Sequence record: OP752703.1
Length of the DNA: 64,000 nt
Strand: one strand, 5' to 3'
Both the position numbers and the translations under genes were made by a program. Shown here piece by piece: positions 4,630-25,578 of this stretch. The notes beneath the pieces are model-generated. The model saw only the letters and a program-made list of their open reading frames with translations, had not been told where the DNA came from and ran no database searches. Each line of letters begins with the position of its first letter. Position 1 is the first letter of the stretch.

Positions 4630-5004
4630 ATGACCCTCAGCATCGCCACCGTCGAACGTCGCTTCACTTCCTTTGACGTGTACCTGAACGATAAGCTGAT
4701 CGACACCACTTTCCACCAAGGCGAGACGGTCGAGGATCAGAAGCGCTCGCTGATCGACCATGACGGCTATGATTCGGAAATCGAAGTCTACGGCGTGGCC
4801 GAATCGGTTCTCCCGCTGACAAAAAAGGAAATGCGTACCCTGCTGGAAGACGTGGGCGGCGAAGTGTTTCAGGACGTGGTGAGCTGGCATTGGCGCGATG
4901 ACACGGGCGCAAGCCTGCCGTTCCAGACCGAAAGCGATGCACTGGCCGATGCCGTCGAATCGCTGGGACTGGACACCAAGGGTATCGAGGATACCCGCCA
5001 GTAA
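4630..5004 (+). CDS. Hypothetical phage protein
   Basis: Cassette promoter; KRSLIDHDGY segment. Confidence 0.85.
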   Translation: MTLSIATVERRFTSFDVYLNDKLIDTTFHQGETVEDQKRSLIDHDGYDSEIEVYGVAESVLPLTKKEMRTLLEDVGGEVFQDVVSWHWRDDTGASLPFQTESDALADAVESLGLDTKGIEDTRQ

Positions 5005-22991: not shown

Positions 22992-23065
22992 TTCTTAAAA
23001 AGGGCTTGCCAAGTGCAAGCCCTTTTGCTATTCTACACACATACCCACTCACTAAGGAAACGACC

Positions 23066-23437
23066 ATGGAACTGCATCCGTCGATCACTCTCCCCTTCAT
23101 TGAGTACGTGTGCAAGTCCGTCCACAACAACGATACCGACGACCTCGCCAGCGACTACTGCGACCGCCATAAGGACGCCTATGGCATCAAGGCCCGTTGG
23201 GTGTTCTCCCGTACCTATACCGTCAATGAATGGCTCGTCATGTTCTCGGGCCTCGCCTACGCCATCGATGCAGAGTGCGAACGCGAGGAAGCCGAACAGA
23301 AAGCATTCATGGAACGTATCGCTTCCGTGGGCCTTACCGCATGGGCCGAGCGCAACAACATCCGCTCGGAATATGATCTGATGGAACACAACCAAATCAA
23401 TGAGTACAGGATGCTTGACCGTGGGGAAGTGCGCTAG
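23066..23437 (+). CDS. Phage protein (DxHKDAYGIKxR type)
   Basis: Hairpin promoter and AAGGA. Confidence 0.82.
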   Translation: MELHPSITLPFIEYVCKSVHNNDTDDLASDYCDRHKDAYGIKARWVFSRTYTVNEWLVMFSGLAYAIDAECEREEAEQKAFMERIASVGLTAWAERNNIRSEYDLMEHNQINEYRMLDRGEVR

Positions 23438-23468
23438 TATACTACACACACCATCACGGAAAACCATC

Positions 23469-23822
23469 ATGAACCAGATTAACCCTGAATTCGGACGTAA
23501 GCTGTTCGACGCCATGGCTGACACCCTCTATAAGGACCGTAGCCGACTGGCCTACATCATCACCGTGTCGCCCTCGCAGGCTAACACCCTCTACCTGCGC
23601 GCTACCCGTGACGTACAGTGTGCGCCCCTCCTGCATCATATCTCCAATGGCATGACCGCCGCAACCATCTGCATCCGCTATGAGGATATGGCTCTCCTGC
23701 GCACGGCCATCATTCAGGAGAATGACGCTACTCGACGCAACGGCCATACGCCAGCCCAGCACATGGTTGACATTGACACCATGCTTGCCATCGCATACCA
23801 GACAACTAACACCATCGACTAA
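23469..23822 (+). CDS. Hypothetical early protein
   Basis: Cassette promoter and CGGA. Confidence 0.8.
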   Translation: MNQINPEFGRKLFDAMADTLYKDRSRLAYIITVSPSQANTLYLRATRDVQCAPLLHHISNGMTAATICIRYEDMALLRTAIIQENDATRRNGHTPAQHMVDIDTMLAIAYQTTNTID

Positions 23823-23884
23823 ACCTCTTGCACCCTAGGGTATGTCCCTGTATACTACACACATACCCTCAAAGGAGATAACAC

Positions 23885-24052
23885 ATGAATGTAATGCACA
23901 ACATAGAGCGCATCAATGGCCGCTGGGTAGGCTATGACTCCAAGGGACAGGCCCACCGCATCAGTGGCAATACACATAGTGGATACATTGTAAAGGGTAA
24001 GTCGTTCAAGTATCTACGTAGTGTGTCAGAATACCTCTACACTGTAGCATAG
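23885..24052 (+). CDS. 55-aa protein, last cassette
   Basis: Cassette promoter and AAGGAG; not in track. Confidence 0.72.
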   Translation: MNVMHNIERINGRWVGYDSKGQAHRISGNTHSGYIVKGKSFKYLRSVSEYLYTVA

Positions 24053-24073
24053 CATACACACCACAGCTATGCA

Positions 24074-24108
24074 AGGGGTTGACATACACTCAGCCCCTAT
24101 GCTACCAT
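24074..24108 (+). promoter_or_regulatory. Orphan hairpin promoter with no downstream gene
   Basis: AGGGGTTGA-N7-TCAGCCCCT; TTGACA-18-TACCAT. Confidence 0.6.
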
Positions 24109-24234
24109 GGGGAGGGGTGAAGGCAAAACAAGTTTGAGTTTTTAAAGACTTTCTTTTTATTTTGTTGTGGAATCGCCCGTAGCCCTATGGCTCAAGCCTC
24201 GATATGGACACAGACAAAAAACATTTTACCCCCT

Positions 24235-24377
24235 ACCATACACAAACCATACAGACAGACCATCCCTTAAAAAAATTTTTCTACCATAAAATTACCATCT
24301 GTCCAACCATTTCCCCAAACAAGTTTGTGTTTTTACCATACGGAAATACCATTAGGTCCACCATTTCGGCAGACCAT
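24235..24377. repeat. Ten ACCAT pentamers at about 12-bp phasing
   Basis: At 24235, 24246, 24259, 24283, 24294, 24306, 24335, 24348, 24360, 24373. Confidence 0.85.
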
Positions 24378-24419
24378 TTCAAATTTTTCCCAAATTTTTC
24401 TTGCGGCCAGACCTTTTTC

Positions 24420-24635
24420 TTATCCTAATAGAGCATCTAGGTAGTGGACAACCTTCTTGATTACCACAGGAAGAACCTCTCTATTGGCATAAAAGTCCAC
24501 ATGTTTGTAATTACCATCCCTTAGATAGCGGTGATTATCTTTTAGGTATTCCACTACGGTCATTTTGCGGCTGTTGGCGGCAACACAATCTTCCCATAGT
24601 ATTGATTGAACTTTTATTTCGTTATCACATGCCAC
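24420..24635 (-). CDS. Micro-ORF array protein (GTG start likely)
   Basis: C-term IKKVVHYLDALLG. Confidence 0.7.
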   Translation of the reverse strand: MACDNEIKVQSILWEDCVAANSRKMTVVEYLKDNHRYLRDGNYKHVDFYANREVLPVVIKKVVHYLDALLG

Positions 24636-24640
24636 GGCGA

Positions 24641-24862
24641 TTAATCCTTTATCAGATGGGTATCGATTACCCACATCATATGTTTGATGTATGTGAGACG
24701 GTAGAAGTCATATTCTTTTCTAAACCTTCCGTATTCTTCGACATATGATAGTGGGTTATAGTCAAAGCTTGCGAATGCGGCCCCACCTTCCAATATATTA
24801 CGAGCGATATCGGTTTTGTTGTGGAACTTTATGAAATGTACGTCAACTACTGGCGGGCGCAT
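24641..24862 (-). CDS. Micro-ORF array protein
   Basis: C-term IKHMMWVIDTHL. Confidence 0.75.
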   Translation of the reverse strand: MRPPVVDVHFIKFHNKTDIARNILEGGAAFASFDYNPLSYVEEYGRFRKEYDFYRLTYIKHMMWVIDTHLIKD

Positions 24863-25145
24863 GATCCTCTCCGAATAGTTCAATGAACCATCCTTTATGC
24901 TTTAGGTTGATAGCGTATAGGGAACGATATTTCGTATCGGCTCTATTTCTACACTCTGGCCCACCGAATGCCTCAATGTATAACTTTAGGTCGTAATCGT
25001 ATTTGATGAAGTCAAGAGCGATTTCGGTGTACTCTGTCCCACGATTACTGATCTTACCCCAACTATCTTCTACGTTTTCTATAGTGTAGTTTGCATTTAG
25101 CTTTCTTGGGCTAGCGAGGACTACACCCATATTGACTAATTTCAT
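24843..25145 (-). CDS. Micro-ORF array protein
   Basis: AGGAG RBS; LKHKGWFIELF. Confidence 0.8.
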   Translation of the reverse strand: MKLVNMGVVLASPRKLNANYTIENVEDSWGKISNRGTEYTEIALDFIKYDYDLKLYIEAFGGPECRNRADTKYRSLYAINLKHKGWFIELFGEDHAPASS

Positions 25146-25391
25146 TTATTCTCCTAGATGCTGGTCATAAAAGTACATAAGCTTCCACTTACGGACGGTT
25201 TGTTTAGCGTATGTTAAATTGTAGTTTCCACTAATGTATGCTGCCTGAATACCTTTGAAGATCATATCATATAACTCTGTTGACCCTATTAGGATAGTGC
25301 TTCGGGTGGAAAGCGTATCAAAAGTATAGGAACACCATATGGCATTCCTTTCTTCGCTACTTAGATTGTAGTATTCATCATCTGTAATCAT
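25146..25391 (-). CDS. Micro-ORF array protein, paralog of 31344-31622
   Basis: IWCS, LSTR, WKLMYFYD. Confidence 0.85.
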   Translation of the reverse strand: MITDDEYYNLSSEERNAIWCSYTFDTLSTRSTILIGSTELYDMIFKGIQAAYISGNYNLTYAKQTVRKWKLMYFYDQHLGE

Positions 25392-25392
25392 A

Positions 25393-25578
25393 TCATTTGT
25401 TTGAAAGAAGGTTAAATGACCATGTGATGTATTTTATCTCAATCATCTGATATAGGCAATAAGCTGCACGTTTGTGTTGGCCTAATAGTTTCCTATAAGC
25501 ATAGGCACCACCGGATGCTATACTGGCTATTTGCTGCGCGTCAATGAAACGTGATGGGGGAGAGTAGCGGTAGTTCAT
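25393..25578 (-). CDS. Micro-ORF array protein
   Basis: IKYITWSFNLL; ATGA overlap. Confidence 0.75.
   Translation of the reverse strand: MNYRYSPPSRFIDAQQIASIASGGAYAYRKLLGQHKRAAYCLYQMIEIKYITWSFNLLSNK

Follow-up and report, generated by a model that had tools for sequence, protein, structure and literature searches.

Results

Genes and features of the gap

The DNA analysed here (the window, a stretch of 64,000 nucleotides) corresponds to bases 1–64000 of the Stenotrophomonas jumbo phage RAS14 (OP752703.1); window positions 23000–25500 matched this record at 100% with the same coordinates. The RAS14 record is 319,635 bp long, and there is no terminal repeat in the deposited sequence. Phage CM1 (OP883945.1, 319,518 bp) also matches window positions 23000–25500, and the start point of its record differs from that of RAS14. 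Besides CM1, the sole named relative, and the nearest to RAS14, is the Xanthomonas jumbo phage XacN1 (AP018399.1).

A preliminary description of this locus had reported two converging gene blocks, a G-poor gap between them, an orphan hairpin promoter, a duplicated 18-mer and ten ACCAT units in clusters of 3, 3 and 4 with spacings of 11, 13, 24, 11, 12, 29, 13, 12 and 13 bp. All of these were found again. The + strand genes end at 24052, the - strand genes start at 24420, and the RAS14 record carries no annotation from 24052 to 24420. The last + strand gene of the early block (23885–24052) encodes 55 aa. On the other side, the - strand block of small ORFs begins with a gene at 24420–24635. The G+C content drops across the gap from 0.50–0.55 to 0.38–0.41 (about 0.51 versus about 0.40), and G makes up 9.6% of 24193–24420.

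The elements of the gap are given here as they follow each other on the + strand. The last hairpin promoter (24074–24108) is followed by a copy of the 11-mer AAACAAGTTTG at 24126–24136 and by a T-rich block, ACTTTCTTTTTATTTT (24148–24163), which is conserved in alignments with XacN1 and other relatives. The ten ACCAT units occupy 24235–24377, spaced by 11–13 bp within each group. An A-run/T-run palindrome, TTAAAAAAATTTTT, for which no strand is assigned, lies between the first and second ACCAT groups (24267–24280); XacN1 has TTTTTAAAAAATTT at the aligned position. The second copy of AAACAAGTTTG is in direct orientation at 24317–24327. The gap closes with a distal module (24378–24419) made of two AAATTTTT tracts and then GACCTTTTT (24410–24418). 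The two 11-mers are the core of the duplicated 18/19-mer, whose copies at 24126 and 24317 are 95% identical, and they are the only occurrences of AAACAAGTTTG on either strand of the 319,635-bp genome.

Alignment with the mapped end of XacN1

XacN1 has a 65,875-bp direct terminal repeat (DTR), with copies at 1–65,875 and 318,796–384,670 (PMC5852040). Its first assembly was a collapsed contig of 318,795 bp; the repeat was detected by 2x coverage, PFGE and restriction digests, and the exact ends were determined by run-off sequencing (PMC5852040). The XacN1 paper gives the repeat coordinates only and does not describe elements at the boundary (PMC5852040).

We read the unique/repeat junction of XacN1 on the minus strand and then aligned it to the RAS14 window. 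The gap aligned base for base with the mapped left end of the XacN1 DTR. The first base of this DTR (record position 318,796, equal to position 1) aligns to window position 24192, so the cut in RAS14 is predicted at 24192|24193. The XacN1 end is thereby placed within …CCCTATGGCT|C…, and the predicted terminase cut site, GCCCGTAGCCCTATGGCT|C, spans 24175–24193 with no strand assigned. By this prediction the repeat ends at 24192 and unique DNA starts at 24193. The 55-aa gene and the early block, which is collinear with the XacN1 DTR, are then on the repeat side, and the - strand gene at 24420–24635 is on the unique side.

The neighbouring genes and the motifs agree between the two phages. The RAS14 gene at 23066–23437 is a homologue of XacN1 ORF002 (381–743), which adjoins the left end of XacN1, and has the opposite orientation. 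Both phages have the same order of elements: CAAAACAAGTTTG, ACTTT.TTTTTATTT, CCC.TA.CCC.ATGGCT|C and an A/T palindrome, then the second AAACAAGTTTG, phased pentamers, two AAATTTTT tracts and ACCTTTT. By its alignment and by these common flanking motifs, the RAS14 gap is homologous to an experimentally mapped DTR end.

A conserved core surrounds the predicted cut

Homologues of the 123-aa neighbouring protein led to contigs of independent samples (word search and contig look-ups), designated loci L061–L069. A core of ~117 bp (24114–24230) around the predicted cut was kept in seven distinct relatives. It is 80–90% identical to four relatives, compared with 67–70% for the DNA of the neighbouring gene. 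Between XacN1 and RAS14 the core is 62% and the neighbouring gene 64% identical. Sequences beyond the core are essentially unalignable among relatives (51–56%), apart from the distal module, which is present in RAS14, XacN1, L061, L066, L067 and L068. The unique-side half of the core, ..AATAYGGACA..AAAAACATTT on the + strand, lies at 24193–24230 and was defined from the alignments of relatives. All relatives keep AACAAGTTTG and, 59–60 nt on, ATGGCTC, which reads ATAGCCC in the most distant relative. The CCCTATGGCTC motif is also kept in all of them.

The inner copy of AAACAAGTTTG lies 56 nt inside the predicted end of RAS14. It is invariant in the seven distinct relatives and lies 55 nt inside the mapped end in XacN1. 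XacN1 has AAACAAGTTTG only at 56–66 (repeat copy 318,851–861) and at 318,724–734. Thus the pair brackets the XacN1 end just as in RAS14. The outer copy is less constant: it is 124 nt outside the predicted end in RAS14 and 61 nt outside the end in XacN1, it is present in L061-65 and L069, degenerate in L067, and absent from L066 and L068.

L061-65 and L066 encode an identical 118-aa neighbouring protein, and their repeat sides are identical too; this identity continues past the cut site for ~37 nt. Past this point (locus positions about 4660–4800) their unique-side DNA is unrelated: L061-65 has a + strand gene of 163 aa, whereas L066 has an ACAGT array and different genes. The repeat edge is thus also a recombination (mosaic) joint. 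The last conserved unique-side gene of XacN1, ORF457 (317,529–317,870), has its RAS14 homologue at 144,058–144,366, 120 kb from the RAS14 boundary. RAS14 and XacN1 therefore lack synteny on the unique side of the repeat edge.

Protein-seeded scans of IMG/VR and JGI metagenomes found no relatives. An IMG/VR scan with the pattern AAACAAGTTTG-N40-60-ATGGCTC gave 43 matches, which were set aside as chance matches; none had a second box or similarity to RAS14.

The pentamer array

The ACCAT units start on the + strand at 24235, 24246, 24259, 24283, 24294, 24306, 24335, 24348, 24360 and 24373. At the genome-wide rate, 0.23 units are expected per 143 nt (Poisson tail 1e-13). The probability is about 6e-8 after accounting for the whole genome and both strands, and 8e-12 with the local base composition. 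The array is the largest of any pentamer in the 319,635-bp genome, and no other ACCAT cluster exceeds 4 units. Across the window, ACCAT is over-represented (262 sites versus 152 expected), and the + strand is especially dense at 60–70 kb. This wider excess probably stems from the coding content or codons of Thr/Pro-rich genes, with no relation to the array.

At the same offset, the relatives have arrays phased at ~12 bp, in which the unit is ACCAT, ACAAT or ACAGT and the number varies. Compared with the ten ACCAT of RAS14, L068 has nine ACCAT (spacing 12, 12, 12, 13, 12, 12, 12 and 12 bp), L067 has five ACAAT (12, 23, 11 and 12 bp) and XacN1 has three ACAAT (11 and 11 bp). L066 has five ACAGT plus variant units, spaced by 12, 12, 27 and 13 bp. 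L061-65 have one ACCAT and one ACAAT, 11 bp apart, which implies that a long array is dispensable for some relatives. The close relative in run X19 differs from RAS14 within the array by unit-sized and odd-length indels, one of which is an inserted AGACCATCTTTTT. These indels indicate gain and loss of units and rule out a coding role.

The array lies 43–185 nt outside the predicted repeat. Because the predicted end is 43 nt upstream of the first ACCAT, the array itself is not the edge. It is also the least conserved part of the region, whereas the core around the cut is the best conserved part. L061-65 and L066 combine an identical repeat side with different arrays, which argues against the array defining the cut site.

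Promoter, ORF and RNA features

The promoter at 24074–24108 has a stem, AGGGG/CCCCT, around the -35 box TTGACA (24079–24084), with a TG before the -10 box TACCAT (24103–24108). In a consensus scan it scored 10/12 as TTGACA-18-TACCAT. It belongs to a real class, AGGGGTTG(A/C)..CAGCCCCT followed by a -10 box, which has at least 12 copies, all on the + strand between 3.7 and 24.1 kb. Members of this family (window 3692–24108) carry the -35 box, as TTGACA or TTGCAA, within the loop of a G4/C4 hairpin; TATACT or TATAGT comes after it, along with a conserved ACACACATCAAC start region. The primer used to map the XacN1 end (positions 781–810) carries the same hairpin-promoter motif. No ORF follows the element at 24074, in keeping with its description as an orphan. 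It is kept in L061–L068, with TACCAT or TATGAT as the -10 box, and is absent from XacN1 and L069. Since XacN1 is without this last hairpin promoter, we left it out of the conserved mechanism proposed below.

An ORF at 24204–24428 was considered as coding and rejected: its ATG (24204) is ACG in three lineages, and relatives differ within it by indels of 1, 2, 4, 8 and 13 nt. An Rfam search of the gap gave no match at E<=1, and a terminator scan of the gap found none. Folding of the gap gave no signal (RNA z = +0.24, DNA z = -0.82). The gap thus shows neither a known RNA family nor a stable conserved structure of the kind that marks a structured non-coding RNA.

Extent, content and depth of the predicted repeat

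XacN1 1–64 kb is collinear, in inverted orientation, with RAS14 from 23.4 kb to 1 and then from 319.6 to 272.3 kb, and XacN1 76–100 kb continues on RAS14 253–234 kb. All of the RAS14 tRNA genes (29/29) are at 285.6–311.1 kb, inside the predicted repeat. XacN1 has 29 tRNA-like sequences per repeat copy (PMC5852040). The RAS14 segment next to the predicted boundary is therefore both collinear with the repeat of its relative and the same in content, as is characteristic of a DTR boundary. The terminase large subunits of RAS14 and XacN1 are 69% identical over their full length, which places them in the same terminase class. ARAGORN placed two suppressor-type tRNAs ('Stop' and 'Pyl') in the RAS14 tRNA region, at 302,428 and 306,328; for XacN1, two CUA suppressor tRNAs in each repeat have been reported.

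A weak alignment places the right end of the XacN1 repeat at about 267,039 in RAS14. The RAS14 repeat may thus be ~76.8 kb and the virion genome about 396 kb, a low-confidence estimate in which the second edge depends on this weak alignment. At the other edge predicted for the RAS14 repeat there is no pentamer array, and blastn gave no strongly conserved motif. A match at 281.4 kb was discarded as the other edge, as it is merely a shared promoter region with genes directly after it. XacN1 has seven GTTAA units at 65,647–65,745, many of them 11 nt apart, 130–228 nt inside the right end of its repeat. The homologous RAS14 region (about 267.0–267.4 kb) keeps TTAAAAGTT.GTT.AA and TTAAC, without a clear array.

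In run X19 (a close relative), contig depth was 106–107 to the left of 24073, 71.7 on the contig spanning 24044–24622, and 57–61 to the right. For this spanning contig, a 2x/1x step at 24192 predicts about 71. The X19 step, which is taken from contig-level depths, is 1.74-fold and not 2-fold, and G+C bias (0.51 versus 0.40) or strain mixtures could mimic it, so that depth is suggestive only. Run X7 had a contig depth step of about 1.5-fold at very low depth. Run X1 had no step (19.8 versus 18.7).

Discussion

A predicted terminal repeat edge in RAS14

Its homology to the mapped XacN1 boundary makes it likely that the gap contains one edge of a DTR, and with it one terminus of the RAS14 virion DNA, and that terminase recognises and cuts the DNA there. 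The RAS14 record is probably a collapsed, circular-looking assembly with one repeat copy. The preliminary description had placed a cis-acting site at the edge of the early or terminal-repeat segment. This placement stands, with the gap homologous to the mapped XacN1 boundary and the left block collinear with the XacN1 DTR. Among the functions that it had listed as candidates, a packaging or terminus site is the one we favour. An origin finds no support, as there is neither a DnaA box nor a skew change apart from that due to gene strand, and an injection stop does not fit, as the array is outside the repeat.

In our model, terminase would cut replicating concatemers between 24192 and 24193. The cut would be guided by the core on both sides: the inner AAACAAGTTTG, the T-rich block and GCCC-N3-GCCCTATGGCT|C, then ~37 nt on the unique side. 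From 24192 the repeat would extend leftward, past position 1 of the record, as far as about 267,039, with the early hairpin-promoter genes and all 29 tRNA genes inside it. Because the array, the second AAACAAGTTTG and the A/T tracts are on the unique side, they would occur once per mature molecule, directly before the right-hand repeat copy. The promoter at 24074 points at the end, so transcription from it would run off the DNA in the left copy and read into the array in the right copy.

The array, the outer 11-mer and the A/T tracts may serve as an accessory landing pad for a putative multimeric, phage-encoded DNA-binding protein. The obvious candidate would be a factor resembling a small terminase, able to wrap or loop the DNA and to present the cut site. 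The ~12 bp period, the clustering and the lineage-specific unit would fit a protein of this kind, and the pentamer it recognises would drift between lineages.

Other readings of the gap

Phased direct repeats beside A/T tracts in non-coding DNA are also what a replication origin could look like. The ACCAT units would then be iterons and the A/T tracts an unwinding element, and the upstream promoter could activate the origin by transcription; in a variant, the origin would prime synthesis that duplicates the repeat before packaging. An iteron origin is recognised by DnaA boxes or an adjacent initiator and by a turning point in skew. The gap has no DnaA box at <=1 mismatch. The GC-skew check proposed in the preliminary description gave no change at the gap beyond the effect of gene strand: GC and AT skew follow the gene strand with no turning point there, and the cumulative minimum is near 37 kb. 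The units are only 5 bp long, their sequence and number vary freely among close relatives, with only 2 in L061-65, and conservation is centred on the cut core and not on the array. We therefore regard an origin as unlikely. An injection stop of the T5 type, which would halt DNA entry once the early genes borne on the repeat are inside the cell, we consider very improbable. It is true that the gap is rich in repeats and borders the early block. With the right end leading on entry, the array would be the unique DNA that follows immediately on the right repeat copy, in which early transcription is directed inward. The T5 signal, however, is inside the terminal repeat and the array is outside it, so that such a stop misfits the position. 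The gap also has no inverted repeats and no DnaA boxes, and a first step of ~77 kb would be unprecedented.

The promoter-like site is kept in most relatives, the gene blocks converge at the gap and depth is flat in run X1. These points agree with a boundary of transcription and nothing more, where the last early promoter makes a leader or small RNA, the G-poor stretch separates the converging blocks, and RAS14 cuts its DNA elsewhere, for example by headful packaging. We judge this to be quite unlikely. The gap has no Rfam match, terminator or RNA fold signal, and its sole ORF has an unconserved ATG and frame-breaking indels among relatives. Moreover, XacN1 has the core without the promoter, L061-65 have a + strand gene after the core, so that the core is not tied to convergence, and the RAS14 terminase has 69% identity with its counterpart in a phage whose fixed ends have been mapped. 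A centromere-like or anchoring site, with the array bound by a partition-type or genome-positioning protein, would resemble parC of plasmid R1, where ParR binds ten 11-bp repeats. The ten clustered and phased units with their ~12 bp period (exactly 12 in L068) are in line with this, and a lineage-specific unit is expected of a cognate pair of protein and site. Against it, no partition genes are known or seen nearby, where the neighbours are small unknown ORFs; the array is always at the repeat edge; and some relatives have lost it. There is only a slight chance that the site has such a role.

Implications

Compared with these readings, a terminase cut region at a repeat edge accounts best for the locus, and it allows a further proposal about the array. 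The pentamers might, as a tentative suggestion, be the recognition code of a co-evolving packaging-specificity protein, by which co-infecting XacN1-like jumbo phages would discriminate their own concatemers. Switching between ACCAT, ACAAT and ACAGT, together with the recombination joint ~37 nt past the cut, would give the specificity, and the AAACAAGTTTG pair would loop the DNA to present the invariant cut site. If this is true, phages with the longest known terminal repeats would have a modular, exchangeable packaging address.

At about 319.6 kb, the GenBank records of RAS14 and CM1 match the collapsed XacN1 contig (318,795 bp) in size; they probably omit one repeat copy and fall short of the virion genome by about 66–77 kb. 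The true ends can now be predicted to the base. Neither a paper on RAS14 or CM1 nor an account of these boundary elements came up in our literature search. For the phage group that has the longest terminal repeats known, the cis-acting layout of the repeat edge would be described here for the first time, which bears on how a repeat of 66–77 kb is duplicated or cut from concatemers. The lineage-specific pentamer arrays offer an experimental route to the protein that recognises the site. The 11-mer pair together with CCCTATGGCTC may serve as a marker when metagenomic assemblies of related phages are to be oriented and completed.

Comparison with known systems

In T5 the injection-stop signal occupies a non-coding stretch rich in repeats, which lies within the terminal repeat towards the inner end, and the T5 repeat carries early genes. 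The RAS14 gap is likewise repeat-rich, non-coding and tied to a predicted long terminal repeat with early genes. The difference is in position, since the RAS14 array is outside the predicted repeat, at its outer edge.

Coliphage T7 has short-repeat arrays, SRL and SRR, reportedly described beside the terminal repeat by Dunn and Studier in 1983. In the T7 sequence, the 130 nt that lead up to the right terminal repeat contain seven CCTAWRG units. Like the prediction for RAS14, T7 is a fixed-end DTR genome with short direct repeats on the unique side, adjoining the right repeat copy; the resemblance is one of layout only, as the sequences are unrelated. In T7 an upstream promoter reads across the junction. 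T7 belongs to an unrelated phage group, and its repeat is 160 bp, compared with about 66–77 kb. Its units are 7 bp long, irregularly spaced and continue into the repeat.

The SPP1 pac region (pacL-pacC-pacR) and lambda cosB (R sites) are binding sites of the small terminase. In both, short repeated boxes phased by about one helical turn and intrinsically bent A/T tracts flank the cut, and the same motif is found on both sides of it. By analogy, the direct 11-mer pair across the predicted RAS14 cut recalls pacL and pacR. Packaging in SPP1 and lambda is of the headful or cos type and, in contrast to the prediction for RAS14, involves no long DTR; neither site has sequence similarity to RAS14.

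The closest counterpart is the left DTR boundary of XacN1. It differs from RAS14 in having three ACAAT instead of ten ACCAT, an outer 11-mer 61 instead of 124 nt from the end, no hairpin promoter before the end and different unique-side genes. In the other elements the two boundaries are alike. Both have the neighbouring gene, the inner and outer AAACAAGTTTG, the T-rich block and CCC-ATGGCT|C, which in XacN1 is at the mapped end, and both continue with A/T tracts, phased pentamers and the ACCTTTT module.
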